Shown here piece by piece: positions 9,948 through 62,054 of a stretch of DNA of 64,000 nt. The position numbers and the translations under genes are program-made. Position 1 is the stretch's first letter. The number at the start of each line of letters is the position of its first letter. This DNA is from Hyalangium minutum (GTDB taxonomy: Bacteria; Myxococcota; Myxococcia; Myxococcales; Myxococcaceae), in NCBI RefSeq assembly GCF_000737315.1, contig NZ_JMCB01000005.1, positions 62,001-126,000 on the forward strand, written 5' to 3'. Below the pieces are notes generated by a model. That model saw nothing but the letters and a program-made list of their open reading frames with translations, did no database searches and had not been told where the DNA came from.

Positions 9948-10114
9948 TCAGGGCTCCTGCGACGCGTGGGGTCCGAGCCCGTCAAGGATGCCATGGGGTG
10001 GGTGGATCCGCTGGGTGAGGCATGTGCCTACACAGTGAAGGTGCGGCCAAACAAGCGTGCTTTGGGGAAATTAAGAGCTTGAGCGAGGGGTATCGGAGCG
10101 CGACAGTTCTGATC

Positions 10115-13100
10115 ATGGAACAGGGGCGGCGCGCGACAGACCGGAAAGCCGTAGGTCTGCTGGTGAAGCTCAAGCACTCGGATGTGGGGAGCTTCGCAGA
10201 GGAGTTCGCCACCAACTTGAGCCCTGGCGGCATGTTCATTCGCACGCGTACACCGCAGGCGGTGGGCACGCTTGTGAAGTTCGAGGTGCAGATTGCCGGC
10301 GGCGTCCGCGTGCTGCGCGGCACGGCCGTGGTGCGCTGGGTGCGCGAGACGACCAACGAGGAAGGCCCTCCGGGCATGGGGCTCCAGTTCCAGGAACTGG
10401 ACCCGGTCACCCAGTCGCTCATCGATCGGATGCTGCAGCTCAGCAAGGCGGCCGCTTCAGCGGGTGGGGCCGCGGCGGCGGGGGACAAACCCTCCGTGGA
10501 CGTGGAGGCGCTGGAGCGGGAGATGCTGGCCAAGGGCATGCTGGACCGGGTCGGCAAGCGCATCACCGCCTCGCGCCTGCCTGCCATCGCGCCCTCCGTT
10601 GCCCCGGTCTCCCGAACGGCGCCCAAGCAGGGCCCCGGTGCGAAGCGCCAGGCCGAGGAGCTCCCCTCGGGCCCGATGCTGACCGATGAGCGGCTGGAGG
10701 AGAGCGCCGATCTGGGCGACCTCATGGACGATCTCGAGTCGATGGGCTCGCAGATCGGCAAGCCCGGCAAGCCGCCCGTGTACTCGGTGCACACGGCTCC
10801 CACGCCCGTGCCCCTGGCCGTGCCCCCTCCCGGCGAAGATGACGTGAACATCGCCGTCGATGACCTGCTTTTGGTCACCCCGGAGTCTGCTTCCGCGTCC
10901 TCCGAGGTGAAGTTCGAGGTCGTCGACGAGCCCATGCCCGACATCGACTTCGAGATGGAGTCGTTGGGCGGGGATCTGCCCGTGGCCGTGGGCATGGCGC
11001 TGGAGGACGCCGAGGTGGCCCCCGTCCTTCAGGGCCAGCCCGTGCCTCCTCCTCCTCCGGCTGCACCCGCTCGTCCTGCGGCTCCGCTGCCGCCCGTGGC
11101 GAAGGCCTACCCTGCCGTAGCGCCGCAGCCTGCTCCCTCTGTGCAGGCTGCTCCGCCCCCGCCCCCGGTCTCCGCCGCGCCCCAGGTCCCGCCGCCCGCT
11201 CCGCCGCCTCCGGCCGCTCCGCCGCCTCCTCCGGCCGCCGCGGCTCCTCCAGCTCCGCTCAAGCCTGCGTTCGACGTGGATGTCGAGCTGGGCCTCATTG
11301 GCCCCAAGCTGGTGAACCAGTCGGACTCGCCGGACTTCAAGCCTGGCAAGGGCGTGGAGTTCGAGCTGAACCTCGGAAGCGGCGAGGACATCGACGTCGA
11401 CAAGCCGGGTCAGAAGCCTCGGCGCAAGCCTCCCAACCGCGCGCCGCCGCTCCCTGCCGCTACGCCTCCGTCTTCAGGGCCCGCGCCCTCGGCTCCTCGT
11501 TCGTTCCCCGCGGGGGCGCCCGAGGCTCGTGCGGAGGCGCCGCGTCCCGCTGCGCCCGTTCCCGGGAGCGCTGCCGCGCCTGCGCCCGCGCCTCCCCGGC
11601 CGCCGGTTCCCGAGGCTCCCCCCAAGATGGTCTTCCCGCCGACCGTCTTCCTGCATCCGCCCGAGCCAGTGGTGGGCACGGGGCCGGTGATAGGCATCGA
11701 TCTGGGCACCACCAACTCGTGCGTGGCCATCATGACGGGGGGCCGTCCCCAGGTGTTGCGCTCGAAGGAGGGCTACAACACCATCCCCTCGGTCATCTCG
11801 ATCAGCTCGCAGGGCAAGCTGCTCGTGAGCCACCGGGCCAAGAGCCAGCTCGTCATGCGCCCCACGCAGACGGTCTACGGCGCGAAGCGCATTGTCGGCC
11901 GTCCCTATGAGAGCGCCGTGGTGAAGCAGGTCCGCGAGCGCTTCCACTACGAGATCGTCCCCGACGCGCTGGGCCGTGCCGCCGTGCGCGTGGCCGACAA
12001 GGTGCTCTCGCTGGAGGAGGTGCAGGGCCTCATCCTCAAGGAGTGCAAGGAGATGGCTGAGCAGCACCTCGGCCAGAAGGTGGAGCGGGCGGTGGTGACG
12101 GTGCCCGCCTACTACTCCGAGCCGCAGCGCGAGGCCGTGCGCAAGTCCGGCGCCCTGGCGGGCCTGAAGGTCGAGCGCATCCTCAACGAGCCCACCTCCG
12201 CGGCGCTGGCCTACGGCCTCAACCGCGAGATGGACAAGCGGGTGCTGGTCTACGACCTGGGCGGCGGTACCTTCGACGCGACCATCCTGCGCATCGAGAA
12301 GAACGTCTTCGAGGTGCTGGCCACCGGCGGTGACATCTTCCTGGGCGGTCTCGACCTCGACAACGCCATCGTCGACTTCCTGCTGGAGCGCTTCCAGCAG
12401 CTGGAGAACGTGCCCTTCCAGGGAGACGGCGTGGCCCTGTCGCGCGTGAGTGACGCGGCCGAGAAGGCGAAGATCGCCCTCTCCGAGCGCCAGCACTACG
12501 AGGTCCATATCCCGATGCTGATGATGGACGAGATCGGCCGACCGAGGGACCTCAACTTCACGATGACGCGCGCGGACCTGGAGCGCATCTGCGAGAGCCT
12601 GGTGTCGCGCACGCTGGATGTGGTGCGGGACGTGCTGCTGGACGCGCGGCTGAAGCCCAGCGACATCGACGACATCATCCTCGTGGGCGGTCAGGCGCGC
12701 ATGCCGCTGGTGCGCGAGAAGATCAAATCGCTGTTCGGCAAGTCGGCGCACTCGAGCGTGAACGCGGACGAGGCGGTGGCGCTGGGCGCGGCGCTGTACT
12801 CGACGGCGATCGACAAGGTGAGCAGCGTGGTGCTCATCGACGTGCTGCCGATGACGATCGGTCTGGCGATGCCGGGCGGCTCGTTCCAGCGCGTCATCGA
12901 GCGCAACACCCCGCTGCCGGCGCAGCGCTCGTTCGCGGTGGCGACCTCCCGGGACGACGAGGAGGTGCTGGAGCTGTCCATCTTCCAAGGAGAGGACAAC
13001 CACATCTCCGCCAACGAATACCTGGGCACCGTGCGGCTGGAGGGACTGCCGAAGGGCCCGAAGGGCTCGGTGCGCGTGGCGGTGACGATCAAGCTGGACG

Positions 13101-13315
13101 CGGAGTGTGTGCTCTACGTCGAGGCCCGGGAGTACCAGACGCGCAAGACGGTGCGGGCGACGCTGGCCACGCGGTACACGCCGGAGGAGTTGGCCCAACA
13201 GCTCAAGGTGGACGCGAACGCGGCGCGCGCAGCCGAGGAGCGCCGGGGCGCGGATCTGCGCGAGCGCGCGGGCCGCTTCTGGGGCTTCCTCAAGAAGGTG
13301 GTGGGCCGGTCCTGA
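10115..13315 (+). CDS. PilZ (TIGR02266-type)-Pro/Ala linker-Hsp70/DnaK fusion protein
   Basis: N-terminal RATDR...NLSPGGMFI PilZ; Hsp70 motifs GIDLGTTNS, TVPAYY, NEPTSAALAYG, VYDLGGGTFD, VGGQARMP, linker VVLIDVLP; short lid. Start placed at ATG 10115. Confidence 0.85.
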   Translation: MEQGRRATDRKAVGLLVKLKHSDVGSFAEEFATNLSPGGMFIRTRTPQAVGTLVKFEVQIAGGVRVLRGTAVVRWVRETTNEEGPPGMGLQFQELDPVTQSLIDRMLQLSKAAASAGGAAAAGDKPSVDVEALEREMLAKGMLDRVGKRITASRLPAIAPSVAPVSRTAPKQGPGAKRQAEELPSGPMLTDERLEESADLGDLMDDLESMGSQIGKPGKPPVYSVHTAPTPVPLAVPPPGEDDVNIAVDDLLLVTPESASASSEVKFEVVDEPMPDIDFEMESLGGDLPVAVGMALEDAEVAPVLQGQPVPPPPPAAPARPAAPLPPVAKAYPAVAPQPAPSVQAAPPPPPVSAAPQVPPPAPPPPAAPPPPPAAAAPPAPLKPAFDVDVELGLIGPKLVNQSDSPDFKPGKGVEFELNLGSGEDIDVDKPGQKPRRKPPNRAPPLPAATPPSSGPAPSAPRSFPAGAPEARAEAPRPAAPVPGSAAAPAPAPPRPPVPEAPPKMVFPPTVFLHPPEPVVGTGPVIGIDLGTTNSCVAIMTGGRPQVLRSKEGYNTIPSVISISSQGKLLVSHRAKSQLVMRPTQTVYGAKRIVGRPYESAVVKQVRERFHYEIVPDALGRAAVRVADKVLSLEEVQGLILKECKEMAEQHLGQKVERAVVTVPAYYSEPQREAVRKSGALAGLKVERILNEPTSAALAYGLNREMDKRVLVYDLGGGTFDATILRIEKNVFEVLATGGDIFLGGLDLDNAIVDFLLERFQQLENVPFQGDGVALSRVSDAAEKAKIALSERQHYEVHIPMLMMDEIGRPRDLNFTMTRADLERICESLVSRTLDVVRDVLLDARLKPSDIDDIILVGGQARMPLVREKIKSLFGKSAHSSVNADEAVALGAALYSTAIDKVSSVVLIDVLPMTIGLAMPGGSFQRVIERNTPLPAQRSFAVATSRDDEEVLELSIFQGEDNHISANEYLGTVRLEGLPKGPKGSVRVAVTIKLDAECVLYVEAREYQTRKTVRATLATRYTPEELAQQLKVDANAARAAEERRGADLRERAGRFWGFLKKVVGRS
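11030..11650 (+). repeat. Low-complexity Pro/Ala-rich coding linker
   Basis: Runs such as PPPPPAAPARPAAP and PPPAPPPPAAPPPPPAAAAPPAP; imperfect CCG/CCT/GCT repeats. Confidence 0.8.
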
Positions 13316-13361
13316 GGCCCCCCTCTGGCTCCCACGGGAGCGGTGCTGGTAGACGTGGCGT

Positions 13362-15044
13362 ATGTCGCGTCTCCCTGCCTCGCTGATCCTCCTCGCCATG
13401 ACCGGGGCCTGTGGCTCGGGCTCTGGTGGCGGTCCTGGTCCTTCGAATCCCGGGACGACTCCGAACACTCCTGCGGTCGAGATTACTCCGGCGGCGGGGG
13501 ACGAGTGGTATCGCAAGGCCGTCTTCTACGAGGTCTTCGTCCGGAGCTTCCAGGACTCGAATGGAGACGGGAAGGGGGACCTGAAGGGCCTCCTGTCGCG
13601 CCTGGACTATCTCAACGACGGCGATCCGAACACGACGCAGGACCTGGGCGTGGATGCGCTGTGGCTCATGCCCATCTTCGAGTCGCCGAGCTACCACGGC
13701 TATGACGTGGTGGACTACGAGCGCATCGAGCCGGACTACGGCACCCTGGAGGACTTCGAGCTGCTGTGCGTCGAGGCCCACAAACGGGGGATGCGCGTCA
13801 TCCTCGACTTCGTGATCAACCACTCGGGGGTAGGGCACCCGTGGTTCGTGGAGTCCGCCTCGTCGCCCACGTCGGCAAAGCGCGGCTGGTACGTGTGGAA
13901 GGATCAGGATCCGGGCTGGAAGCAGCCATGGAGCCAGTTCTCGAACACCCCCACGTGGCACAAGCGCAACGGCGCCTACTACTACGGCGTGTTCTGGGAC
14001 GGGATGCCGGACCTGAACATGCAGAACGCGGAGCTGCGCGCGGAGGTGAAGCGCCTGGCCTCGCTGTGGCTCGAGCGCGGCGCGGATGGCTTTCGGCTGG
14101 ATGCCGCGCGCTACCTCATCGAGACGGGGGCGGGCGCGGGCCAGGCGGACACTCCGGAGACGCACGCCTTCTGGAAGGAGTTCGCCGCGCACGTGCGGCA
14201 GGCCAAGCCGGACGCGGTGCTGGTGGGGGAGAACTGGAGCACCACGCCCATTGTCGCCACCTATTACGGCTCGACGGCGAAGGTGCCGGGTGGCGACGAG
14301 CTGCCGCTCAACTTCAACTTCGGTATCTCCGAGCAGATCCTCGCGGGGCTCAATGGCAACAATGCGGCGCCCATCGCGGCGAAGCTGGCGGAGATGGCGC
14401 GCGTATACCCGGCAGGGGTGAGCGATGCGCCCTTCCTCACGAACCACGACATGGTGCGGCTGTCCACGCAGCTCAGTGGGAACGCGGGCAAGCTGGCCAA
14501 TGCGGCGGCGCTGCTGCTCACCCTGCCTGGGGCTCCCTTCCTCTATTATGGAGAGGAGCTGGGAATGTCGAACGGTGGCGAGAACAACGACGAGTCCAAG
14601 CGCACGCCGATGCCCTGGAACGGCACGGCGGGAGGTGGCTTCACCACGGGGACGCCCTGGTACAGCTTCTCGGGGGGGTACACGTCGGGGCGCAACGTGG
14701 CTGCCCAGGAGAACGCTGCGGGCTCGTTGTTGTCGCGCTACCGGGCGCTGATCCGGGCGCGCCATGCCTCGGAGGCGCTGAGCCGCGGGGGACTCAAGCT
14801 CCTCTCGTCGACGCAGGGGACTCAGGTCATGCTCTCCTTCGTGCGCACGCTGGGCGAGGAGCGGGTGCTGGTGGTGCACAACGTCACGGACTACAACGTG
14901 TCCGCGGGCCCGTTCGACCTGCCGGGTACCACGCCCGAGATTCTCTTCGCCGACAGCAACGTCTCCGCGCTCACGAAGACCGCCACCGGTTGGCAGGCGA
15001 GCCTGCCGCCTCGCACCACGGGCATCTGGCGCCTGAAGCCGTGA
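13362..15044 (+). CDS. GH13 alpha-amylase lipoprotein (GH13_36-like)
   Basis: Lipobox ..MTGAC; DSNGDGKGDL, YHGYDV, catalytic triad in GFRLDAARY / GENW / TNHD. Confidence 0.9.
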   Translation: MSRLPASLILLAMTGACGSGSGGGPGPSNPGTTPNTPAVEITPAAGDEWYRKAVFYEVFVRSFQDSNGDGKGDLKGLLSRLDYLNDGDPNTTQDLGVDALWLMPIFESPSYHGYDVVDYERIEPDYGTLEDFELLCVEAHKRGMRVILDFVINHSGVGHPWFVESASSPTSAKRGWYVWKDQDPGWKQPWSQFSNTPTWHKRNGAYYYGVFWDGMPDLNMQNAELRAEVKRLASLWLERGADGFRLDAARYLIETGAGAGQADTPETHAFWKEFAAHVRQAKPDAVLVGENWSTTPIVATYYGSTAKVPGGDELPLNFNFGISEQILAGLNGNNAAPIAAKLAEMARVYPAGVSDAPFLTNHDMVRLSTQLSGNAGKLANAAALLLTLPGAPFLYYGEELGMSNGGENNDESKRTPMPWNGTAGGGFTTGTPWYSFSGGYTSGRNVAAQENAAGSLLSRYRALIRARHASEALSRGGLKLLSSTQGTQVMLSFVRTLGEERVLVVHNVTDYNVSAGPFDLPGTTPEILFADSNVSALTKTATGWQASLPPRTTGIWRLKP

Positions 15045-15076
15045 AGTTGCCAGTTGCGGGGTGCTACATTTTGGGC

Positions 15077-15880
15077 ATGTCCCGCATCTGGCTCGTGCTC
15101 GTCTTGGTGTGTGCCCTGGCTCCACTGCAGGGAAGCGCCCAGAGTTCGCCGCCGCCGCTGGTCCCGTCGGCTCCCGAGGAGGACCCATATGATCCCAAGG
15201 GAGGCCCTACCAGCAGCGATCCCTATGGTGGCTACGATGACGAGCCAGCGCCCAGACGGAGCTCCGCTGACGGCGAGGAAAAGCCCAAGGAAGAGATCAT
15301 CCCCCATAAAGGGACGTCCTCGAGAGGCTCGAGGGCAAACAATGGGCGCGTCATCGGCGAGGCCGTGGTGGGGGGGCTGTTTGGGGTAGCGGGGGCCGTG
15401 CCGGGCTTGCTGATGATGTCAGAGCTCTGCCTGACAAGTGACTGTGACGACAGCGTCAACTCCCAGTTTTTCACGGGCATGGCGTTGGCCTTCACAGGAT
15501 GGACGCTGGGCTCGGGGCTCGGCATCGTGGTGGGAGGCAGCCTTGCCGGAGGCGAGGGTGACTTTCTGGCAACGCTGGGGGGATCTGCCTTGGGAGCGTT
15601 GGTGGGAGTGGGCGGGAGCCTGGCCACCCTCGGGCTCTCCCTGGCGCTGCATTCGGTCAGTGAGGGGCTCGGGATCCTGGCGCTCGTCATCACAGTGCCA
15701 CTCGTGAGCCTTCCCCTCCTCGTCTTGGGCCCCCTTGTGGGTGGAATCCGTTTCTACGAGAGCTCCCACGAGAGCGCCGTTGCACAACAGCAAGGGGCCA
15801 GCGCCAGTGTGCGGATGGTTCCGGTCATCAGCGTGAGCCCCTCGGGCGGGCTCGTCGCGGGGCTCATGGGGCGGTTCTGA
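15077..15880 (+). CDS. Exported/membrane hypothetical protein with Gly-rich hydrophobic helices
   Basis: ATG 15077 MSRIWLVLVLVCALAP signal, acidic Pro-rich linker, GxxxG-rich helices, ends GLVAGLMGRF. It is the 3' part of the listed 704-aa ORF. Confidence 0.65.
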   Translation: MSRIWLVLVLVCALAPLQGSAQSSPPPLVPSAPEEDPYDPKGGPTSSDPYGGYDDEPAPRRSSADGEEKPKEEIIPHKGTSSRGSRANNGRVIGEAVVGGLFGVAGAVPGLLMMSELCLTSDCDDSVNSQFFTGMALAFTGWTLGSGLGIVVGGSLAGGEGDFLATLGGSALGALVGVGGSLATLGLSLALHSVSEGLGILALVITVPLVSLPLLVLGPLVGGIRFYESSHESAVAQQQGASASVRMVPVISVSPSGGLVAGLMGRF

Positions 15881-15881
15881 A

Positions 15882-16832
15882 TCAGTGCACGGGCACCACT
15901 GCGGGCCATGGAGGCGGGTTCGGCCCGAGCACCTGCTCCTGCGTCACTCCCTCCGGCACCACCAGGTCCACCACCGGTGACTGGTTCGCCGCTCCCAACC
16001 TCCCTCCACCAAAAAACTCCTTCGAATCTCCCGGCACGATGGGCAGCACCATGGACGCTCTGGGGCCCTCCTTCCCGAACAGCGAGGACAGGTTCACCTT
16101 GTTCTCGAACAGAGCCCCTGTCACCGCGAGCGCGTAGCCCCACTCCGGCCGAGGCGCGCCGCCAAAGAAGTCGTTCGGCACGAAGAACTCCACCGTCGCC
16201 CCTGTCACGCGCACGCGCGTGGGGAAGAACACCTGCCCCGTCAGCTTGCGCTCCACCTCCGACTCCACCTCGCGCTGCGCGGCCTCGCCCAGGGAGCCTT
16301 GCTGGCGGATCCGCTCCTCGCGCTCCTCCCGTTGCCACTCTCCGCGCAGCTGGTCCCGCGCGTCATACGGCCGAGGCGTGAGCACGATGGCTTTCTCCCA
16401 CGCGCTCCCCGGAGCCAGCGAGAGGTTCCGCCCCGGCAGCGTCTCCGTGCGGCCCGAGCCCTCCACCCGATCCGTATCCACGTACAGGTCCAGGTTGAAC
16501 GTGTAGAACCCGAGCCGCGCCTTCTGCGCCTGCGTCTCTCCGGCGATGTCCACCGTCCGCGCCGCCTGGGGCTTCGCGATGGGCCGCGCGAAGGTCGCCT
16601 CGAACCGCGTGCCGTCATCCTCCGGGTACGCCACCAACAACAGCAGATCCATTGAGCCCGGCCCCAGGTCCTCGCGCAGCGGATAGCGCAAGTCCCCATC
16701 TCCGTGGTCATCCCCGCGCGGATCCGCCAGGGTGAAGAGCGGGGCAGTCCCTCCGGTGCTCCGGGAGAGGCACGCGCTGGCCAGCACGGCCCCCAGCGCG
16801 AGCGGCAGCAGGGCGCGGCGAAGCGGAAGCAT
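15882..16832 (-). CDS. Glucodextranase C-terminal DOMON-like domain lipoprotein
   Basis: Lipobox VLASAC; DPRGDDHGDGDLRYP, MDLL, NLDLYVDTD, WEKAIV, WGYALAVTG. ATG 16832 follows GGAG. Confidence 0.7.
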   Translation of the reverse strand: MLPLRRALLPLALGAVLASACLSRSTGGTAPLFTLADPRGDDHGDGDLRYPLREDLGPGSMDLLLLVAYPEDDGTRFEATFARPIAKPQAARTVDIAGETQAQKARLGFYTFNLDLYVDTDRVEGSGRTETLPGRNLSLAPGSAWEKAIVLTPRPYDARDQLRGEWQREEREERIRQQGSLGEAAQREVESEVERKLTGQVFFPTRVRVTGATVEFFVPNDFFGGAPRPEWGYALAVTGALFENKVNLSSLFGKEGPRASMVLPIVPGDSKEFFGGGRLGAANQSPVVDLVVPEGVTQEQVLGPNPPPWPAVVPVH

Positions 16833-16849
16833 CAACGAGACTCCGTGGG

Positions 16850-16887
16850 AAAAAAGAGAGCCCGGCGAGCGTCGCCGCGCGCCGGGC
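16850..16887 (-). terminator. Rho-independent terminator after the outer-membrane protein gene
   Basis: On the minus strand, GCCCGGCG-loop-CGCCGGGC followed by TCTCTTTTTT. Confidence 0.7.
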
Positions 16888-16915
16888 CCTTCTCAAGCAA
16901 GAAGCGTGAGGCTGA

Positions 16916-19108
16916 CTAGAACTGAGCCTTCATGAACGCCTTCGCGCGGATGTGGTCGAACTCGCGCGTCTCCAGGCTGTTCCACCCGGAGAAGCGGTTG
17001 CGGAAACCCCGCGAGCCCACCTTCACGTTGTGGTCCTTGGCCGTCTGCTCGTCCGCGATCTGCTCCACGAAGCCCGAGCCGAAGTCCGGATCGAACGTGC
17101 CGAACGCGTACTGGCCCTCCAGGCCGAACTCCACGCCCGCGAGGATGTACTTGGCCCGCACCACCACCGAGTTCTTGTTGTGGTAGCCCGAGGCCATCTC
17201 GTGCAGGTTGTACGCCTGGAACGCCGTGTTGCCGTCGAACAGGTCCGCCAGGTACTTCGTGTAGCTCACCGAAGCATACAGGTCATCCGACAGCTGGTAG
17301 CCCGCGCCCGCCGTGAAGGCGTAGTAGCGCAGCAGCCGGTCGTCGTCCGACAGGCTGTCGAAGGGCTTCCACTGGTAGCCCGTCTGGTCCCCCACGGTGA
17401 TGACGTTCGGGTTGCCGAACGTGTCCGCCGTGGACAGGCCCGGCGAGTACTCGTTCTTCAGATCCGCGCAGGCCTCGGTGCCACCGGGGCACGCACCCGC
17501 CTTGTACGGCAGGAAGCGCGAGTCGTTGATGCGCTTGTCCGTCTCGTGGATGAACTTCGCCTTGCCGAAGATGTCGATGCCCCGGCCGAAGTCCAGCACG
17601 TAGCGCGCCTTGAGCACCGCGATGTGCGTCTTCTTGTCCTGGAAGGGCTGGAAGGCCGTGCGGAAGTTGTGGCCCACGCCCGAGTCCAGCTCCGTCGTCG
17701 GGTACGGTGTCTTCGTGTAAGAGGTGTCCGGGCTGTCGTACGCCTGCCAGTTGGTGTTGTAGGTGATGTACGAGTACTCACCCGACAAATCCAGGCCGCC
17801 GTTGCCGTAGACCGGGTTCACCGTGAAGCCCTTCCAGCCGATGGCCGTCTCCGCGAAGGGCTCGTCGAAGTCCGTGAACTCGTTGTCCACGTTGATCGTC
17901 GCCACCTGCTGGGACTCACCCGTCCACCCGCCGTAGCCAATGCGCGTGGGGTTGCCGTTGAACACGCCGTACGAGGCGTTCGAGGGGCCCGGGAAGGCGA
18001 AGCTCGCGTCATGGCCTTCCGTGAGCAGCACGTCCGACTCGCGGCGCGCCGCCATGATGGCCACGTAGTCCGAGCCGATGCTGAAGCCCTGCAGGTTCAC
18101 CGACAGCCCGATGTCCAGCGGATCGCTCAGCGTCACGTCCACCTTGAAGCTGTTGTCCTCGTGGCGGCCGGCGATCACCGGCGAGTAGCCGTTGAGGCCG
18201 AAGTCCGCGGGCGTCAGCACCGGGTCCGCGTTGCTGTACGAGTGGTACAGCGAGCCGCGGATGTCCACCTTGTCGCTCAGGCGCAGGCCGGCCTTCACGC
18301 CGCCCACGCCGTTGCGGAAGCGCGGCACCAGGTCGCGCCCATCGTCCATGTTGTTGTCCACCGTGGTGGGGGCGATCTCCGCGTCGCGCACGTAGCTGAA
18401 GATGCCGCCCACATCGAGCGCGTCGCTCAGCGCCCACTTGGTCTGGAAGCCGTACGCCGCGTCCGCCGCGTGGAACAGGCCCGTGCTGAAGGACGGACCG
18501 GCCCACAGGCGCGGCAGGCTGATGCGGGTCGCATCCCAGGTGATCTTCCGGTCGAACGCCGAGCCCTGGAGGAGGATGCCGTGCGCGTTGTCACGGTCGA
18601 TGTAGCGGATGCGGCCGATGACGTACGGATCGAACTGGCCGAAGTCATTGGCGCCGATGGTGGCTGAGTCGATCAGGTAGCCCGGGGTGATGATCACCGC
18701 CACGCCGCGCAGCTTGATGTACTGGTTGGAGCGCGGATCGAACTCGCCGCAGTCGCCGCTCACGCAGGGCTTGGACGGGTCACCGCCGAAGCCGCCGAAG
18801 TTCGTCCAGAAGTTCTGGCTGAACCGGCTGTGGATGCGGCCCTTCACCTCCACCTGGCTGGAGAGCCGGGCGTTGAGCAACAGCTCGAGCTCCGTGCCCT
18901 GGCCGTTGTCGCCATAGCCCTCGCCGGGGATGGTGGTGAAGTTGTACATGGCGCCCTGCTCTCGCAGGTTGCCGTAGAGCCACTTGGTGTACGTGGTGCC
19001 GCCAATCTGCAGCTTCGGCGCGTCCTGGGCGATGGCGGGCGCCACGGGCAGCAGCACAGCGGAGGCGGCGAGCGCCAGCGCGCTCCTCCGCAGAGACTTC
19101 TTCGACAT
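16916..19108 (-). CDS. Putative outer-membrane beta-barrel protein of the maltodextrin locus (family not recognised)
   Basis: ATG 19108 after GGAGGGG; signal peptide MSKKSLRRSALALAASAVLLPVAPAIA; alternating amphipathic beta-strands rich in Y/F/G; terminal Phe (KAFMKAQF). Confidence 0.65.
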   Translation of the reverse strand: MSKKSLRRSALALAASAVLLPVAPAIAQDAPKLQIGGTTYTKWLYGNLREQGAMYNFTTIPGEGYGDNGQGTELELLLNARLSSQVEVKGRIHSRFSQNFWTNFGGFGGDPSKPCVSGDCGEFDPRSNQYIKLRGVAVIITPGYLIDSATIGANDFGQFDPYVIGRIRYIDRDNAHGILLQGSAFDRKITWDATRISLPRLWAGPSFSTGLFHAADAAYGFQTKWALSDALDVGGIFSYVRDAEIAPTTVDNNMDDGRDLVPRFRNGVGGVKAGLRLSDKVDIRGSLYHSYSNADPVLTPADFGLNGYSPVIAGRHEDNSFKVDVTLSDPLDIGLSVNLQGFSIGSDYVAIMAARRESDVLLTEGHDASFAFPGPSNASYGVFNGNPTRIGYGGWTGESQQVATINVDNEFTDFDEPFAETAIGWKGFTVNPVYGNGGLDLSGEYSYITYNTNWQAYDSPDTSYTKTPYPTTELDSGVGHNFRTAFQPFQDKKTHIAVLKARYVLDFGRGIDIFGKAKFIHETDKRINDSRFLPYKAGACPGGTEACADLKNEYSPGLSTADTFGNPNVITVGDQTGYQWKPFDSLSDDDRLLRYYAFTAGAGYQLSDDLYASVSYTKYLADLFDGNTAFQAYNLHEMASGYHNKNSVVVRAKYILAGVEFGLEGQYAFGTFDPDFGSGFVEQIADEQTAKDHNVKVGSRGFRNRFSGWNSLETREFDHIRAKAFMKAQF

Positions 19109-19199: not shown

Positions 19200-20012
19200 T
19201 TACTTGCTCTGGCGCACCATCTTCAGCGTGGCCTTCGTCTTGGAGGCTCCCTCCGCGCCACACTCGTACTTGAGCATGTCGTACTGGGCCTGCTTCTCGG
19301 ACGCGTCGCCCTTGCCGCTGCCGGCCAGGATGTCGATGACCTGCGGATCGCAGTCGCCGTCGTTGCCGCCGCCGAAGCGGTGCTGGCCCTCGTACTCGTT
19401 GACCTTGCGGGTGAGCAGGTCATTGCCGGAGGGGAAGCCCTCGTTGGATTGCATCACCACCTGGAAGCCCCACTGGCTGGGGTCACCCTTGAGGGACTCG
19501 GCGTCCACGCTGCCGGTGATCTTCTTGCCGGAGCCCTTGGTGCGCTCGGGGACGATGATGTCGTCCTTCAGGCCTGCGGCCTTGGTCTCCACCTCTTTGC
19601 GCACGCGCGCGGGCGCCTGCGGCGAGAGGATGACGAGCTTGTCCCAGGCCGAGTCCGGGGCGAACTGGACGTTGAGGCCCGGAGGAGCGTCCGTGTGGCC
19701 GCTGCCCTCCTTACCGTCCGTGTCGATGAAGACGAAGACCATCTGCGTGGCGAACCCGTTGCCCATCTTCCACGGGTCCTCCAGGTTGGTGCCCAGCGTC
19801 ACCTGGAAGTCCACCTTGTTGCCCTTCTTCTCGGCGGTGAACTCGGTGATGTCGAACGAGGCCTTCTTGTAGACGGTGTCCGTCGGGTACTTGTAGGTGC
19901 CCGGGCCGTTGTCGTCTCCAGACGGATCCTTGAAGGTGACCTTGCCGTCGGCGAAGGCGGGGAGGCTGAGCAGCGAGGCAGCGAGGGTGAGGGTTGCGAC
20001 ACGGGTCTTCAT
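19200..20012 (-). CDS. Periplasmic glucodextranase C-terminal DOMON-like domain protein
   Basis: Signal peptide; FKDPSGDDNGPGTYKYPT, FDIT, NGFATQMVFVFIDTD, GLNVQF..AWD, WGFQVVMQSNEG. Confidence 0.8.
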   Translation of the reverse strand: MKTRVATLTLAASLLSLPAFADGKVTFKDPSGDDNGPGTYKYPTDTVYKKASFDITEFTAEKKGNKVDFQVTLGTNLEDPWKMGNGFATQMVFVFIDTDGKEGSGHTDAPPGLNVQFAPDSAWDKLVILSPQAPARVRKEVETKAAGLKDDIIVPERTKGSGKKITGSVDAESLKGDPSQWGFQVVMQSNEGFPSGNDLLTRKVNEYEGQHRFGGGNDGDCDPQVIDILAGSGKGDASEKQAQYDMLKYECGAEGASKTKATLKMVRQSK

Positions 20013-20037: not shown

Positions 20038-20916
20038 TCAACCTTTCACGCTTCCAGCCGTGAGGCCGGACACGAGGTACTTCTGGAGGAACAGGAACAG
20101 AAACACCACGGGGATGGAGACGATGATGGAGCCTGCGGCGAAGTAGCCCCACTGCTGGGAGAACCCACCGACGAAGAAGCGGAGCCCGACCGGCGCCGTG
20201 TACATGGCCTCTTGGTCCATGAAGGTAGCCGCCAAGATGAACTCATTCCAAGAGGTCATGAAAGAAAACAGCGCTGTCACGGCCACGGCGGGCTTAGCCA
20301 GGGGAAGGATGATGCTCCAGAAAATCTTGCCTACCGAGGCGCCCTCCATGAGCGCCGCCTCCTCCAGGTCCTTCGGAATGGTGTCGAAGTAGCCCTTGAG
20401 CATCCACACGCTGAAAGGGATGGAGGTGGTGGCGTAGACGATGATGAGGCCCAGCCGCGAGCTGCCCAGACCCAGCCACTGCACCAGGATGATGAACAGG
20501 GGGATGAGCATCAGGGTGCCCGGGAACATCTGAGACACCAGGAAGGCCATCATGCCCGCGCGCTGGCCGGGGAACTTGAAGCGGCTGAAGGCGTAGGCGG
20601 CGGTGCAGGCCAGGAAGACGCCCACCACGGTGGTGCCCACGGCGATGATGGCGCTGTTGAGCATCCACTGGGCGAACGGCTGCTCCGTCATCACCGAGCT
20701 GAAGTTGGAGAAGGACCACTGCTCCGGCCACGGGGTGATGGCGCGCAGCCGGTCAGTGAACGTGGGCTCCGGCGGCAGCGTGGCGATGGCCAGGTTCTGC
20801 CGCCCGGAGAAGGCGATCGTGACGACCCAGAGGATGGGGTAGATGGTGAAGAGGGTGAAGAGCACCAGCAGCACATGCAACGGCAGGTGCGGGACCCCTT
20901 CGCGACGCGTGGCCAT
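20038..20916 (-). CDS. malG: Maltose/maltodextrin ABC transporter permease MalG
   Basis: EAA loop IPKDLEEAALMEGAS..IFWSIILPLAKP; six TM helices; 1-nt overlap with the malF stop. Confidence 0.85.
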   Translation of the reverse strand: MATRREGVPHLPLHVLLVLFTLFTIYPILWVVTIAFSGRQNLAIATLPPEPTFTDRLRAITPWPEQWSFSNFSSVMTEQPFAQWMLNSAIIAVGTTVVGVFLACTAAYAFSRFKFPGQRAGMMAFLVSQMFPGTLMLIPLFIILVQWLGLGSSRLGLIIVYATTSIPFSVWMLKGYFDTIPKDLEEAALMEGASVGKIFWSIILPLAKPAVAVTALFSFMTSWNEFILAATFMDQEAMYTAPVGLRFFVGGFSQQWGYFAAGSIIVSIPVVFLFLFLQKYLVSGLTAGSVKG

Positions 20917-22991
20917 TACGCTGCCTCCGTGGCGCGTGAGAGACGGTTCTGCACCACGCTGTAGAGCAGCAGGATGCCGAAGATGACGGTGGAGTACGCC
21001 GCCGCGTAGCCGTAGCGGTAGCGCTGGAAGGCGTACTTGTACGCCTGCGTGACGAGGATCTCCGTGGAGTTGCCCGGCTCACCCTCCGTCACCAGGAAGA
21101 TGATGTTGAACATGTTGAAGGTCCACACCACCGACAGGATGACTGCGGGCACCAGCGCGGGCTTGAGCGAGGGCAGGGTGATGGCGACGAACTGCTGCCA
21201 GCGGCTGGCTCCGTCCACGCGCGCAGCCTCGTAAAGCTCCATGGGGATGGACTGCAGGGCGCCCAGCGACACCACCATCATGAAGGGGAACGAGAGCCAG
21301 CCGTTGGTGGCCAGCGCCGTCAGGTAGGAGGTGAAGGGGGACTCGAACCAGGACAGGCCCTGGCCGCCGAACATGCGGATGACGTGGTTCACCACGCCGA
21401 ACTGCTGGTGGAACATGCCCTTCCAGATGAGCGCGGTGATGTAGTTGGGCATGGCCCACGGCAGGATGAGCAGCACGCGGTAGATGGGGCGCAGCGCCAG
21501 GTTGGGGGTGTTGAGGATGAGCGCCAGCACCAGCCCCACCGAGACGCCGATCGCCACATTGGTGATGGTCCACACCACCGTGAAGAAGAGCGTCCAGTAG
21601 AAGTTCAGGTAGTTGAAGACCCAGGTGCCGTTGTCCCCCTGCCGGGCGATGTTGAAGTCCCCGAGGATCTCCACGTAGTTGCGCAGGCCGATCCAGATCT
21701 CCGTCAGCGGCTGGTTGGTGTTGTAGAGGTTGGCGTCCGTGAAGGAGAGGGTGATGCCGTAGATGAAGGGGAAGAAGACGAGCACCACCATGCCCACCAT
21801 GGCCGGCGCGATGTACGCGTAGGCCTCGCGGTGCTCCACCATCGTGGACACCGTGCGGTGCAGCCCGCCCAGGCCGATGAAGGCCAGCAGCGCCAGCCCC
21901 AGCAGCCCCAGCAGCGCCGAGGCCCGTGAGGCTTGGCTCTGCAGCGTCTCCACGCGCTGGGTGACCACGGCCTCGTTCACCGTGCCCTGCGCGTCCAGCA
22001 GGCCCAGCGGCTTGCGGTAGACGTCCGTGTCCCAGGTGCCCGGCGCGAGCGCCGGCTCGGTGGTGAGGTTCTGCGCGGTGATGGCCGCCTTGCCGCGCTC
22101 GGCGATGGCGCGCAGGTGCTCCGCCACCGCGCCCTGTGAGCCACGCACCCCGTCCTCCAGGGCGCGCATGGAGTACTGGGTGTAGCCGCCCAGGCCCGCC
22201 ATGAAGAGCACCGCCGCTGCAGCCACCAACTGCCACTGCCGCTGCAGCTTCACGAAGGAGACGCCCAGCAGCACCAGCAGCGGCAGGAAGAAGGCCAGCA
22301 GCACCGGCGCCAGCCCGGGACGCTCCGCCTTGGGGAGCGGCTGGGTGGCCAGATCCACCATGCCCACCACCCCTCCATCCGCCTCGACCGGCGCGGAGAA
22401 GAGCCGGCCGCCCGTGGGCAACAGCTCGATCTCGATCTCCGGCTTGCGGGCGCTGCCCTCTTCGCGGTTGGTCTCCACCGCGGCGCGCAGGCGCTGCCCA
22501 CGGTCGTAGATGACCTTCTCCTCGCGCGCGAGCCGCCGAGGCGCCGCCTTGTCGCCTTGGTCCTCCGGGAAGGTGGAGGACTCCAGCTTGACGCCGGAGA
22601 AGGCGATCACGCGCACGTGGCTGCCCGCGGGCAGCTGCTCCTTGGCCGCGTCCACCACGGCGCGCACCCCATCTCCGCTGCCGCCCGCGCGGCGCACGAG
22701 GTCCGCCAGGGCGTTCAGGGAGATGAGGGTGCGGCGCTGCTCGCGCTCGATGGCGGCGTCTTCACGCGCCTGGGCGAGCAGGGCGTAAGCCAGCGCCAGC
22801 CCCACGCCGAGCGCAAGGGCCAGCCCCACCAGCACGCGGGGCCGCCGCACGCTGGGGGGATTCGTCTGAGGAGGAATCACGGAGGAGCCTGCTGCAGGGG
22901 GAGAGACCTGGACACCGGAGGGACCGGGCCCAGGAGCGGCGGCGCCAGGGGAGGCGCCGCCCGAGGAAGGCGGGGGTACGGCGCTGCTCAC
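20916..22991 (-). CDS. malF: Maltose/maltodextrin ABC permease MalF with a large N-terminal extension
   Basis: C-terminal ~300 aa permease with ELYEAARVDGASRWQQF and ILPWAMP; ~380 extra N-terminal aa with TM and soluble domains. Confidence 0.8.
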   Translation of the reverse strand: MSSAVPPPSSGGASPGAAAPGPGPSGVQVSPPAAGSSVIPPQTNPPSVRRPRVLVGLALALGVGLALAYALLAQAREDAAIEREQRRTLISLNALADLVRRAGGSGDGVRAVVDAAKEQLPAGSHVRVIAFSGVKLESSTFPEDQGDKAAPRRLAREEKVIYDRGQRLRAAVETNREEGSARKPEIEIELLPTGGRLFSAPVEADGGVVGMVDLATQPLPKAERPGLAPVLLAFFLPLLVLLGVSFVKLQRQWQLVAAAAVLFMAGLGGYTQYSMRALEDGVRGSQGAVAEHLRAIAERGKAAITAQNLTTEPALAPGTWDTDVYRKPLGLLDAQGTVNEAVVTQRVETLQSQASRASALLGLLGLALLAFIGLGGLHRTVSTMVEHREAYAYIAPAMVGMVVLVFFPFIYGITLSFTDANLYNTNQPLTEIWIGLRNYVEILGDFNIARQGDNGTWVFNYLNFYWTLFFTVVWTITNVAIGVSVGLVLALILNTPNLALRPIYRVLLILPWAMPNYITALIWKGMFHQQFGVVNHVIRMFGGQGLSWFESPFTSYLTALATNGWLSFPFMMVVSLGALQSIPMELYEAARVDGASRWQQFVAITLPSLKPALVPAVILSVVWTFNMFNIIFLVTEGEPGNSTEILVTQAYKYAFQRYRYGYAAAYSTVIFGILLLYSVVQNRLSRATEAA

Positions 22992-24214
22992 TTCTTCCGC
23001 AGCCCCGCGACGTCCTTGGCCACCTGCTGCTGCGCCTTGTCGAGCGCGGCCTTCGGCGAAGAGGTCTTCTTCAGGATGGCGTTCATCGCCGTGGTGGCCG
23101 GCGACCAGACCATGGTCATCTCCGGCACGTTCGGCATGGGCACCGCCACGTTCACCTGATCACGGAACGCCTTGAGCTGCGGATCCTTGGACACGTCGGC
23201 GTCGTTGTAGACCTCGGTGTTCGCGGGACTCTGGCGGCCCTCGAGCGCCAGCACCTTGGCGGAGGTCGTCAGGGTGAGGAACTTGGCGAACTCGAAAGCG
23301 GCCTCCTTGTTCTTCGAGGGAGCCGTCACGTACACGCCCTCCACCGTCATCCACGGGCGCATCGGCTTGCCGCCCGCCTCGTCAATCGTGGGCAGGGTGG
23401 TGATGCCGTAGTCGATGCCCTTGGCGATCTCGCCCAGGAACCACGGACCGGAGAACACGATGCCCGCCTTGCCGTCGTTGAAGAGCGAGGTGATGAGCGC
23501 CGTAGAGGGCTCCGCGGGGAGGATGCCGTCCTTGTCGATCCACTTGAGCAGGTAGTCGATGGACTGCACGTTCTCCTTGGAGTTCATCGTGGGGTTGAAC
23601 TTGGCGTCGAACACGCCGCCGCCGAAGCCGTTCATCAGCGCCGCGTGGTAGTAGAAGTCGCCGTACGAGTACGCCAGCCCGAAGCGCCCGGCCTTCTTGT
23701 CCGTGAGCTTCTTGGCCAGGGCGACCAGCTCGCCGGTGGTCTTCGGCGGGGTGGGGACGAGCTTCTTGTTATAGATGAGCGCGATGTTCTTGTAGTTCAG
23801 CGGCAGCCCGTACACAGTGCCCCGGTACGTCATCGCCTGCATCGTGGTGGGGATGAAGCGCTGCTTGAGCGCGTCATCCAGGAAGAAGTCGATGGGCTCG
23901 ATGGTGTTGCCGGCCTCGATCCAGCCGCCCAGACGGTCCTGCGCGAAGATGAAGAGGTCCGGACCTTTGCCGCGCGGCACGGTGGCGGTGATCTTGTCCG
24001 CGAAGGCGTCATACGGCACGGCCAGCGTGGTGACCTTGAACTTGCCGGCGTTGGCCTTGTTGTACTCGGCCACCACCTTCTCCAGCGCGGACTTCTCCTC
24101 GGCACGGTAGGAGTGCCACAGGACGATCTCCGTCTCGGCGGCGGCGGCGGTCAGGGGCAGCAGACCGAGCACACTGAGGCACACGGCCGCGATCAGCAGT
24201 CGCAGGTTCTTCAT
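22988..24214 (-). CDS. malE: Maltose/maltodextrin-binding periplasmic protein
   Basis: Signal peptide; GKGPDLFIFAQDRLGGW, YGLPL, ALIYNK, FSGPW, PMPNVPEM..VW. Confidence 0.85.
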   Translation of the reverse strand: MKNLRLLIAAVCLSVLGLLPLTAAAAETEIVLWHSYRAEEKSALEKVVAEYNKANAGKFKVTTLAVPYDAFADKITATVPRGKGPDLFIFAQDRLGGWIEAGNTIEPIDFFLDDALKQRFIPTTMQAMTYRGTVYGLPLNYKNIALIYNKKLVPTPPKTTGELVALAKKLTDKKAGRFGLAYSYGDFYYHAALMNGFGGGVFDAKFNPTMNSKENVQSIDYLLKWIDKDGILPAEPSTALITSLFNDGKAGIVFSGPWFLGEIAKGIDYGITTLPTIDEAGGKPMRPWMTVEGVYVTAPSKNKEAAFEFAKFLTLTTSAKVLALEGRQSPANTEVYNDADVSKDPQLKAFRDQVNVAVPMPNVPEMTMVWSPATTAMNAILKKTSSPKAALDKAQQQVAKDVAGLRKK

Positions 24215-24243: not shown

Positions 24244-25338
<1,095 letters not shown>

Positions 25339-25365: not shown

Positions 25366-26955
25366 TTATTGGGTTTGGATTCTTCCCAGGATGCGTGCCC
25401 CGAGCGGCTCCACCGTGAGCTCCAGGGAGGGGCCTTCCAGCCGGCCCCCGTTCAACACGTCTTCCGCCGCCGTCCTGCCCCACGCCTCGGGCCAGGGCAG
25501 CGACACCTTCGCTGGCTGCGCGCCGCGGTTGATCGCCACGATCACCGCGTCGCCCGAGCCCGCCTCGTGCCGCAGGAAGACATAGAGGTCTCCGTCGGTG
25601 GAGAGCCCCTGGTGCGTCCCCCGCGAGAGCGCCACGTGCGCGCGGCGGATGGAGGTGAGCTTCTGGTAGAGCTTGCGCAGGTCCTCGTCGCGCGGCTTGC
25701 CGGCGCCGGGCCTCACGTCGCGCGAGCCCCACGGCATGTCGCTGCGGTTCGCGGGCCAGTCGCCGCCGGGGCGGGCGACCTCCTCGCCGTAATAGAGGGT
25801 GGGGATGCCGGAGGTGGTGAGCTGCAGCACCACCGCGAGGCGGAAGCGCTTCACGTCGCCCTCGAGCTGGTGCAGTGCGCCCGTCACGTCATGCGAGGAC
25901 AGGAAGTGGGCCAGCAGGTAGCCGGGGCGCACCTTGGCGCGTGACTTGAGGTACTTGTCGAAGGCGATGGTGCGGCCGCGGCCCTGCACGAAGGCGAGCG
26001 TGCTGCCCTGGAAGCCGAAGTCGAAGCCGGCGTCCATCTCGTCCCCGGCGAACCACGGGTCCAGCGACTCCGCGTCGCCACCCCATACCTCGCCCAGCAG
26101 GAAGAAGTCCTTGCTCACCTCTTCGCGCAGGCGGCGGCGGTGCTCCTTCCAGAAGGGGTGATCCACGTGCTTCACCGTGTCCAGCCGGAAGCCGTCCACC
26201 CCGGAGCGCTTGGCCCAGTCCAGCTGCGCGTCCAGCAGGTACTTGGCCACCTCGGGCAGCTCTGTCTTGAAGTCCGGCAGGCCGGAGACGCAGCTCGTCA
26301 CGTCGTCCTGGCCGCAGGTGCCCCGCTCCTCCGAGCGCAGCCAGTTCTTCGTCTCGGGCTTCGTGACGTAGTGCGAGTTGTAGCCCGGGTGGTTGTAGAC
26401 CACGTCCAGCAGCACGCGGATGCCCCGGCGGTGCGCGTCGTCCACCAGCGCGCGCAGGTCTTCCTCGGTGCCGATGCGCGGATCCAGCTGGTGGAAGTCA
26501 TCCGCCCAGTAGCCGTGGTAGCCCCAGTCCGGGAAGCCCGCGCCGGTGACGAAGCTGTCGATGTTCTTCACCACCGGAGTGATCCACAGCGCTGTCACGC
26601 CCAGCGAGCTCAGCTCGTCCAGCTGCTGGCGCAGGCCCTTCAGGTCTCCACCGTGGAAGGCGCCTTGCGCGGCCACGTCCACCGCCGTGTTGTTGGCGGC
26701 ATCTCCGTCGGCGAAGCGATCGACGACGACGAAGTAGAGGATCTCGTCCGCCCAGGGGCGCGGTGCCACTTTGGGCGCGGCGGGCGGAGCGGGGGGCTGC
26801 GGGGCGGCTGCGGTGGGGGGGCTCGCGGGGGTGGGCCCAGCCTCGGGCTGTGGAGCAGTGTGTGCGCAACTCAGCAGGTGAAGCGCGAAAAGCAGCGGCA
26901 CCGTTGCATGACGCAAGCGCACAAGAGCTTGGCTGCGGGGCTGGGGGTCCTGCAT
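25366..26955 (-). CDS. GH13 alpha-amylase/cyclomaltodextrinase-like lipoprotein
   Basis: Lipobox LHLLSC; VDRFADGD, GGDLKG, YHGYW, DVVYNH, GFRLDTVKH / GEVW / SSHD triad. Confidence 0.88.
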   Translation of the reverse strand: MQDPQPRSQALVRLRHATVPLLFALHLLSCAHTAPQPEAGPTPASPPTAAAPQPPAPPAAPKVAPRPWADEILYFVVVDRFADGDAANNTAVDVAAQGAFHGGDLKGLRQQLDELSSLGVTALWITPVVKNIDSFVTGAGFPDWGYHGYWADDFHQLDPRIGTEEDLRALVDDAHRRGIRVLLDVVYNHPGYNSHYVTKPETKNWLRSEERGTCGQDDVTSCVSGLPDFKTELPEVAKYLLDAQLDWAKRSGVDGFRLDTVKHVDHPFWKEHRRRLREEVSKDFFLLGEVWGGDAESLDPWFAGDEMDAGFDFGFQGSTLAFVQGRGRTIAFDKYLKSRAKVRPGYLLAHFLSSHDVTGALHQLEGDVKRFRLAVVLQLTTSGIPTLYYGEEVARPGGDWPANRSDMPWGSRDVRPGAGKPRDEDLRKLYQKLTSIRRAHVALSRGTHQGLSTDGDLYVFLRHEAGSGDAVIVAINRGAQPAKVSLPWPEAWGRTAAEDVLNGGRLEGPSLELTVEPLGARILGRIQTQ

Positions 26956-61989: not shown

Positions 61990-62054
61990 GGCAGGGGCGG
62001 CAATGGCCCGCCGCCTCCGGCGTAGAGTCCTCCGCTAGCGTGTGAGGAGGAACG

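Follow-up and report, generated by a model that had tools for sequence, protein, structure and literature searches.

A predicted 22-stranded, plug-less outer-membrane barrel encoded in a putative alpha-glucan uptake cassette of Hyalangium minutum

Introduction

Among the degraders of polymers in soil, Myxococcota and Acidobacteriota are abundant. To our knowledge, the way in which oligosaccharides pass across the outer membrane is largely unknown in diderm bacteria beyond the Proteobacteria and Bacteroidota. Here, we describe a gene of the myxobacterium Hyalangium minutum that encodes a 730-residue predicted outer-membrane beta-barrel, hereafter the barrel. The gene lies at positions 16916 to 19108 (minus strand) of a 64,000-nucleotide stretch of contig NZ_JMCB01000005.1 (contig positions 62,001 to 126,000). 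This whole stretch is referred to as the window, and coordinates are counted within it unless another locus is named. A preliminary description, made without database searches, had regarded the product as a candidate maltodextrin channel. We examined the gene, its predicted fold, its family and its conserved neighbours, which together point to a role in the uptake of alpha-glucans.

Results

Gene cassette at the window locus

The barrel gene belongs to a co-directional cluster on the minus strand, with the order GH13 (glycoside hydrolase family 13) amylase, malK, malE, malF, malG, gdxA, barrel, terminator and gdxB. The preliminary description had placed the barrel inside a malEFGK operon. Its actual position is distal to malG, and it is flanked by two Glucodextran_C genes, here called gdxA and gdxB, that the description did not mention.

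The first gene of the cassette (25366–26955) encodes a GH13 alpha-amylase in which a Pro/Ala-rich linker comes after a lipobox (LLSC). In NCBIfam it is matched best, though always below the cut-offs, by PRK09505 alpha-amylase models, the family of the periplasmic amylase MalS. It is followed by a malK-like ATPase gene (24244–25338), whose orthologues carry ABC_tran, OB_MalK and TOBE_2 domains, and by a gene for a malE-like periplasmic binding protein (22988–24214), whose orthologues carry SBP_bac_1/8. The malF-like gene (20916–22991) encodes an ATP-binding cassette (ABC) permease of 691 residues, of which only residues 431–687 match the NCBIfam MalF model (E = 8.7e-55). These residues align with E. 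coli MalF positions 262–517, while the first ~430 residues contain several hydrophobic segments and long non-membrane stretches and match no family. MalF homologues in cassettes elsewhere are long as well (581–658 residues), and lengths of 580–690 residues were found wherever gene calls were read. The long N-terminal region could be an enlarged periplasmic module. The malG-like ABC permease gene (20038–20916) was assigned by its cassette position and by tblastn conservation of 70–96%.

Directly upstream of the barrel gene lies gdxA (19200–20012), encoding a 270-residue secreted Glucodextran_C/DOMON-like protein with a signal peptidase I (SPase I) signal (PF09985, E = 8.5e-58). Its paralogue gdxB (15882–16835) closes the cassette and encodes 317 residues with the lipobox LASAC (PF09985, E = 2.9e-33).

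Between the barrel gene and gdxB, a terminator-like hairpin with a U-tract occupies positions 16850–16890 of the minus strand. The hairpin after the barrel stop folds at -36.8 kcal/mol (z = -4.16; 0/200 shuffles as stable) and is followed by CUUUUUU. The strong terminator named in the preliminary description is therefore real; the high expression deduced from it is an invalid inference, since a terminator is uninformative on expression level. Another hairpin, between gdxA and the barrel gene, was no better than shuffles (z = -1.08) and was dropped as a regulatory element. The element between the barrel gene and gdxB varies by genus. In Hyalangium and Archangium, a hairpin with a U-run is found ~55–75 nucleotides past the barrel stop, and in Corallococcus (loci L009, L011, L012, L014, L015, L019, L020 and L022–L024) the 110 nucleotides after the stop codon form structures of -57 to -73 kcal/mol with no U-tract.

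Features of the barrel protein

The open reading frame of the barrel starts with an ATG at 19108, seven nucleotides after GGAGGAGGGG; a longer alternative, initiated by GTG, extends to 19141. The third-position GC content of the gene (GC3 = 0.95) equals that of malE and falls in the highest class within the window, whose overall GC content is ~68%. By this measure, the reading frame is clearly coding. The closest relatives of the window are found in Hyalangium (Myxococcota), at 88% identity.

The translation begins with a Sec signal peptide, MSKKSLRRSALALAASAVLLPVAPAIA, followed by QD. The signal peptide comprises residues 1–27 (19028–19108, minus strand), and its SPase I site is of the AxA type, with cleavage between AIA and QD. 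In the AlphaFold2 model it forms a helix with low pLDDT (predicted local distance difference test). The mature protein begins at Q28 and contains 703 residues. A sequence scan of the mature chain found no hydrophobic run of at least 12 residues, that is, no transmembrane helix. The C-terminus reads AFMKAQF, and its final residue, F730, is invariant in an alignment of 50 homologues (50/50), so that the protein ends in a beta-signal with a terminal aromatic residue, as is typical for barrels inserted by the beta-barrel assembly machinery (BAM). Both the signal peptide and the terminal Phe had been noted in the preliminary description, and both were found again here.

The barrel contains four cysteines, which form two pairs, C115/C120 and C540/C547. 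The second pair brackets the CPGGTEAC loop to which the preliminary description had drawn attention. This loop is real, and both of its cysteines are at least 90% conserved among the 50 homologues, but it is clade-specific, as the corresponding loop L9 is missing in distant family members. The first pair, which the description had not listed, is invariant in the same 50 homologues.

An unnamed family

The barrel has no match in Pfam or NCBIfam even at E ≤ 1, and no match in the PDB by sequence (phmmer) or profile search. When the 50 aligned homologues were scanned against families at E ≤ 10, only sub-threshold matches to DUF2490 and OMP_b-brl were obtained. Neither the barrel nor any of these homologues matches Plug (PF07715), TonB_dep_Rec (PF00593), PF25183 or LamB (PF02264). 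Due to the lack of any Pfam, NCBIfam or PDB match, membership in the LamB, OprB, CymA or ChiP families or among the TonB-dependent transporters was rejected. The preliminary description had reported an unrecognised outer-membrane protein of ~730 residues with neither TonB plug motifs nor a LamB signature; these statements agree with our searches, and no known porin or receptor family that would clearly contain the barrel emerged from Pfam, NCBIfam, the PDB, profile searches or Foldseek.

An exhaustive phmmer search, which covered 1.84 billion representatives, returned 236 clusters at E ≤ 1e-3. All of these clusters lie within the family and none bridges to another, so that a tie to a named family via distant relatives was likewise rejected. 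The sole extra domain among the 236 clusters is Glucodextran_C. A word-indexed search gave 800 homologues, the top 120 of which are all at least 60% identical to the barrel and unnamed or labelled "hypothetical", with the exception of one UniRef entry. This entry, from Cystobacter ferrugineus (P0060, 68% identical), is labelled "TonB-dependent receptor". Since the family lacks a plug and a TonB box, the label looks like an annotation error that could spread.

Relatives of the barrel occur in 271 of 185,579 genomes (one genome per species). The best 80 of these 271 belong to Myxococcota, Acidobacteriota and Ca. Eisenbacteria, with Hyalangium, Archangium, Corallococcus, Cystobacter, Vitiosangium and Citreicoccus as the carriers in Myxococcota, and Thermoanaerobaculia and Holophagales as those in Acidobacteriota. 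Among matches of comparable identity in this species-genome scan, none came from a Myxococcus species. Literature searches on Glucodextran_C/PF09985, myxobacterial maltodextrin porins, DOMON domains with the outer membrane, starch in Corallococcus and maltose in Thermoanaerobaculia found no publication on the family. The barrel is a member of a new, unnamed family.

Predicted fold

An AlphaFold2 model of the barrel, built on the 50-sequence alignment, has a mean pLDDT of 71.7 and a predicted template-modelling score (pTM) of 0.72. DSSP assigns 22 long antiparallel strands to this model, in which ten turns of 2–7 residues alternate with eleven loops of 14–81 residues. As modelled, this pattern fits an outer-membrane barrel whose N- and C-termini both face the periplasm. 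The prediction shares the generic features of this fold, namely antiparallel strands in even number, short periplasmic turns and long outer loops. Strand 1 starts at residue 32, only four residues after the mature start at Q28, which leaves no room for a plug domain or a TonB box, and neither the translation nor the model contains an N-terminal extension able to hold either of them. The barrel is predicted to be a BAM-type outer-membrane protein that is 22-stranded and plug-less.

A second model was computed for P0152, a ~38% identical relative with an extra N-terminal domain, from a separate 31-sequence alignment. It reached a pTM of 0.70 and a mean pLDDT of 67 and likewise contains 22 strands, all of which occupy the same alignment columns as those of the window barrel.

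A Foldseek search against the PDB returned more than 330 matches at E ≤ 0.001, and all 50 matches listed are outer-membrane barrels. MtrB ranked first for both models, with TM-scores (TMq) of 0.35 for the window barrel and 0.24 for P0152. For the window model, LamB (1MAL) scored 0.29 and TonB-dependent transporters scored 0.29–0.33. As the matches are generic barrels with TMq no higher than 0.35, a specific structural relative was rejected. The modelling and Foldseek comparison that the preliminary description had suggested thus returned a membrane beta-barrel and not a soluble or non-barrel fold.

Conserved loops

In the alignment, the mean column identity of the loops (0.76) is higher than that of the strands (0.72), which is unusual for a porin. 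The most conserved loops are L3 (DFGQFDPYVIGRIRYIDR; 0.92), L10 (0.86) and L7 (0.84). The motifs RYIDRDN, SLPxLWAGP, RRExDxLLTEG, DNExxxFDE and ESxIGW are kept even in the distant, ~38% identical clade to which P0152 belongs, whereas that clade lacks both Cys-containing loops (L2 and L9) as well as most of L11. From general barrel dimensions, a plug-less barrel of 22 strands needs something that occludes its lumen. Taking this need together with the conservation of the loops and their total of ~280 residues, we infer that the conserved loops fold into the lumen or touch a partner, as opposed to decorating the surface.

Conservation of the cassette across phyla

The gene neighbourhood was examined by tblastn of eight window proteins against 82 related loci from Myxococcota, Acidobacteriota and Ca. 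Eisenbacteria; the denominators given here are the loci with enough DNA. Directly upstream of the barrel, gdxA is present in 78/78 loci, and malG precedes it in 75/75. The complete amy-malK-malE-malF-malG-gdxA array was found in all 61 loci that could be scored, from three phyla, and the barrel gene is followed by gdxB in 68 of 74. The same arrangement recurs in Thermoanaerobaculaceae, in a second metagenome-assembled genome and beside a barrel relative of only 41% identity. No energy-coupling genes are conserved in the cassette loci.

Between Myxococcota and Acidobacteriota, the cassette proteins are ~50–80% identical. Due to this conservation across phyla, the cassette behaves as one conserved unit that is probably horizontally mobile. 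The fixed gene order also suggests a stronger link to maltodextrin transport than the preliminary description could have seen.

Glucodextran_C partners and natural fusions

The two genes that flank the barrel encode paralogues with 26% identity (E = 1e-18). Their PF09985 scores, 196 bits for gdxA and 116 bits for gdxB, far exceed the gathering cut-off of 22. Furthermore, gdxA matches a domain of the Arthrobacter glucodextranase (PDB 1UG9/1ULV; E = 1e-13). Across all loci examined, gdxA carries an SPase I signal, whereas gdxB is a lipoprotein in Myxococcota only and has an SPase I-type signal in Acidobacteriota. Glucodextran_C is a DOMON/CBM9-like beta-sandwich that occurs in alpha-glucan-active enzymes of families GH15, GH57, GH65 and GH49, and kinetic data implicate it in recognising chains of alpha-glucan (PMC10074034).

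A homologue search with gdxA listed close orthologues only. Distant members of the barrel family connect the two proteins. P0152 (877 residues) and P0174 (959 residues) consist of a signal peptide, a Glucodextran_C domain, a Pro/Ala linker of 30–35 residues and the barrel. A search with P0152 retrieved ~31 full-length fusions of 860–1012 residues from Aminicenantes, CSSED10 and Bradymonadia, and the fusion proteins end in F or W. In the P0152 model, the linker is disordered (pLDDT ~30). Compared with type V autotransporters, the fusions have 22 predicted strands and not 12–16, and they match neither PF03797 nor Omp85/POTRA.

Wherever their neighbours could be read, the fusion genes stand among mal and amylase genes. 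In Aminicenantes, the fusion gene stands immediately after malG in a LacI-malK-malE-malF-malG-fusion array. P0152 precedes a GH13 amylase gene. In Bradymonadia, the fusion has an amylase gene, malEKFG and a further Glucodextran_C gene as neighbours. In the Bradymonadia locus (L088, positions 12850–15734 of that locus, plus strand), two genes without a Pfam match (456 and 464 residues) stand between the fusion and a Glucodextran_C gene of 421 residues, and they may be further components of the cassette.

The junction in the fusions matches the separate proteins: the end of gdxA coincides with the start of the linker, and the end of the linker with the start of the mature barrel. The fusions and their matching junctions provide strong evidence that gdxA functions together with the barrel as a single physical unit. 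The barrel is probably not a stand-alone porin and would work with its DOMON-like partners. As the partners carry ordinary Sec or Lol signals and their domain precedes strand 1 in the fusions, they are most simply placed at the periplasmic face of the barrel; they could instead sit in the lumen, or at the surface by means of a threaded linker. In a metagenomic protein of 1005 residues (P0306), a signal peptide and Glucodextran_C are followed by a poly-Pro linker, then by an OmpA-like peptidoglycan-binding domain and a long unknown region; this is a hint that a periplasmic role is open to the Glucodextran_C module.

Genes surrounding the cassette

The cassette is accompanied by further genes for starch-degrading enzymes. 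A secreted pullulanase with two X25 domains, Pullulanase_N2, CBM48 and Pullul_strch_C is encoded divergently at 27886–31398 (plus strand). Convergent with the cassette, a second GH13 amylase gene (13362–15044, plus strand) encodes a protein with a lipoprotein-type N-terminus and a weakly SusG_C-like tail; most related loci likewise contain a second amylase, encoded on the opposite strand. As a whole, the stretch from 13.3 to 31.4 kb looks like a starch/glycogen utilisation locus.

Two other genes were recorded nearby. Just upstream of the cassette amylase, positions 27159–27596 (minus strand) encode a predicted lipoprotein of 145 residues (AACLWGCATG) without a Pfam match. At 10022–13315 (plus strand), a 1097-residue protein combines an N-terminal PilZ domain of the c-di-GMP-binding type with a full Hsp70/DnaK-like ATPase, an unusual pairing.

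Discussion

On balance, we consider it probable that the barrel is the TonB-independent outer-membrane component of a self-contained cassette for the uptake of alpha-glucans, that is, of maltodextrin, starch or glycogen fragments. According to this proposal, extracellular pullulanase and amylases would cut starch or glycogen and release dextrins, whose chains would cross the outer membrane through the barrel by diffusion, with no energy from TonB. Conserved in-folding loops would narrow the lumen and set specificity, namely L2 (NFW...), L3 (RYIDRDN), L7 (with the motifs RRExDxLLTEG, DNEFxDFDE and ETAIGW) and L10. The DOMON-like partners would attach to the barrel, in the simplest case around its periplasmic rim. 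There they would bind the alpha-glucan chain as it enters and transfer it to MalE and the lipoprotein amylase, which in turn would feed MalFGK2. The new sugar-porin or receptor family that the preliminary description had proposed is supported as far as computation goes, by the absence of any known family and by a cassette order kept in 61/61 loci.

Several points weigh against this proposal. The channel function and the substrate of the barrel are read from gene context and predicted structure. The models are of moderate confidence, with mean pLDDT values of 72 and 67, and the functionally key loops L2, L7 and L8 fall below a pLDDT of 50, so that the pore geometry cannot be read from the models. 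A simple hydrophobic-moment test found weak strand amphipathicity (mean z of 0.6), which was set aside as evidence. Furthermore, direct sugar binding by any Glucodextran_C module has never been demonstrated (PMC10074034).

A different arrangement, which we judge unlikely, would place the Glucodextran_C domain inside the 22-strand lumen as a removable plug. The barrel would then be a partner-gated translocon, possibly coupled to the unusually extended periplasmic portion of MalF, and not a diffusion pore. Lumen plugs are known from LptE in LptD, MtrA in MtrB and the cis plug of TonB-dependent transporters. The barrel has the strand number of these transporters and yet is plug-less, and the fused partner domain sits N-terminal to strand 1, exactly where the transporter plug is found. 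MtrB, a barrel that sheaths its partner, is the best Foldseek match of both models, the two-domain fusion keeps its pTM of 0.70, and MalF reaches 580–690 residues in every cassette for which gene calls were read. However, a beta-sandwich of 230 residues is large for a 22-strand lumen, and in TonB-dependent transporters the plug is joined tightly to the barrel, unlike the partner domain on its long, flexible Pro/Ala linker. With TM-scores of 0.24–0.35, the Foldseek matches are low and non-specific, the conserved loops could occlude the pore by themselves, and the cassette lacks conserved genes for energy coupling. A related idea, doubtful in our view, is that the barrel and its DOMON-like subunit or subunits form an unrecognised class of TonB-independent outer-membrane glycan translocon, in which a beta-sandwich that binds alpha-glucan would fill or gate the lumen. 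The gating subunit would, equally tentatively, be supplied in trans in H. minutum, whereas Aminicenantes and Bradymonadia would provide it in cis, where a plug would be. Together with the enlarged periplasmic region of MalF, such a complex might span the envelope as a conduit.

We assign a similarly low probability to a role in surface display or secretion, in which the barrel would chiefly serve to bring the DOMON-like domain (and perhaps also the lipoprotein amylase) through the outer membrane and anchor it at the cell surface as a starch receptor, in the manner of an autotransporter or a Slam-type lipoprotein translocon, while dextrins would use other porins. The order of the fusions (signal peptide, passenger, Pro/Ala linker of 30–35 residues, C-terminal barrel) is indeed autotransporter-like, the disordered linker (pLDDT ~30) is long enough to thread the barrel, and the amylase and gdxB, both predicted lipoproteins, would have more use on the outside of the cell. 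Yet 22 strands and ~280 conserved loop residues far exceed the known display barrels of 12–16 strands, no match to Autotransporter, POTRA or Slam families was found, and unfused gdxA has no tether. Moreover, a cassette with its own importer and binding protein would still miss an entry route through the outer membrane.

It is very improbable that the barrel exports an alpha-glucan polymer, as AlgE, BcsC and PgaA export theirs, or tethers the outer membrane to the cell wall via an "SLH-like" (S-layer homology-like) partner, as OmpM and SlpA do: although AlgE, OmpM1 and SlpA are among the Foldseek matches, Pfam calls PF09985 "SLH-like" and P0306 joins Glucodextran_C to a periplasmic OmpA-like domain, the structural matches are generic (TM no higher than 0.35), the conserved neighbours are an importer and hydrolases, with no glycosyltransferase, synthase or Wza-type genes present, and an essential envelope tether would not be expected to occur as sporadically as this cassette, which is found in ~270 of the 185,579 genomes (one per species).

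The proposed role as an alpha-glucan channel invites comparison with well-characterized systems. LamB and the sugar porins ScrY, OprB, ChiP and CymA are outer-membrane barrels, and LamB, like the barrel described here, is co-encoded with a maltose ABC importer. LamB forms a trimer, with an aromatic "greasy slide" and polar tracks at its constriction. As in LamB, a TonB-independent route is likely and the conserved loops would be expected to narrow the pore. Just as lamB precedes malM in the E. coli malK-lamB-malM order, the barrel gene precedes a gene for a secreted accessory protein, and the best, sub-threshold NCBIfam matches of the cassette amylase are the PRK09505 models. In contrast, the barrel has no sequence similarity to LamB (PF02264 is absent), its Foldseek TM-score to 1MAL is 0.29, its 703 mature residues and 22 predicted strands compare with ~420 residues and 18 strands in LamB, and its DOMON-like partners appear to be obligatory.

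The SusC/SusD and Caulobacter MalA transporters also have 22 strands, the number predicted here, and the starch locus with a lipoprotein amylase and putative glycan-binding accessories loosely resembles SusD/E/F/G. However, the barrel has neither a plug nor a TonB box and does not match PF00593, PF07715 or PF25183. While its strand number agrees with that of TonB-dependent transporters, the Foldseek TM-scores remain at 0.29–0.33 with no sequence match. Its partners are DOMON-like beta-sandwiches and not SusD-like tetratricopeptide repeat (TPR) proteins, and an ABC importer performs the inner-membrane step, unlike in Sus and MalA. The barrel is thus in neither the LamB nor the Sus/TonB family, as it lacks the defining features that we tested.

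More distant parallels are found in MtrB-MtrA and LptD-LptE, which are also large plug-less barrels co-encoded with, and here probably bound to, a partner. These barrels have 26 strands compared with 22 here, the TM-scores are 0.24–0.35, and the partners and functions are unrelated. OmpM/SlpA and autotransporters share with the fused relatives the succession of N-terminal domain, flexible linker and C-terminal barrel, but SLH, coiled-coil and PF03797 regions are absent here, the barrel size is different, and the context is one of sugar import. Finally, GH15 glucodextranase, GH57 amylopullulanase and the GH65 dextran debranching enzyme share the PF09985 module and the alpha-glucan theme with gdxA and gdxB. 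In those proteins the module is part of a glycoside hydrolase, whereas here it is free-standing and secreted or fused to a membrane barrel.

The proposed function is plausible rather than surprising; what is new is the architecture, together with the conserved unit of barrel and partner. If the proposal is true, fragments of starch and glycogen would cross the outer membrane of Myxococcota and Acidobacteriota through this family, and a plug-less 22-strand barrel with a DOMON-like partner would be added to the short list of specific sugar channels. Roughly 800 "hypothetical" proteins would gain a name, and the Glucodextran_C module would acquire its first non-enzymatic role. Should the lumen instead be gated by the partner, the complex would represent an independent evolutionary solution to the problem that SusCD and LamB have solved. 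With eight genes, conserved across phyla at ~60–90% identity, the cassette is compact and apparently mobile; it could serve as a self-contained system for maltodextrin uptake and could allow partner-assisted transport across the outer membrane to be tested cleanly.

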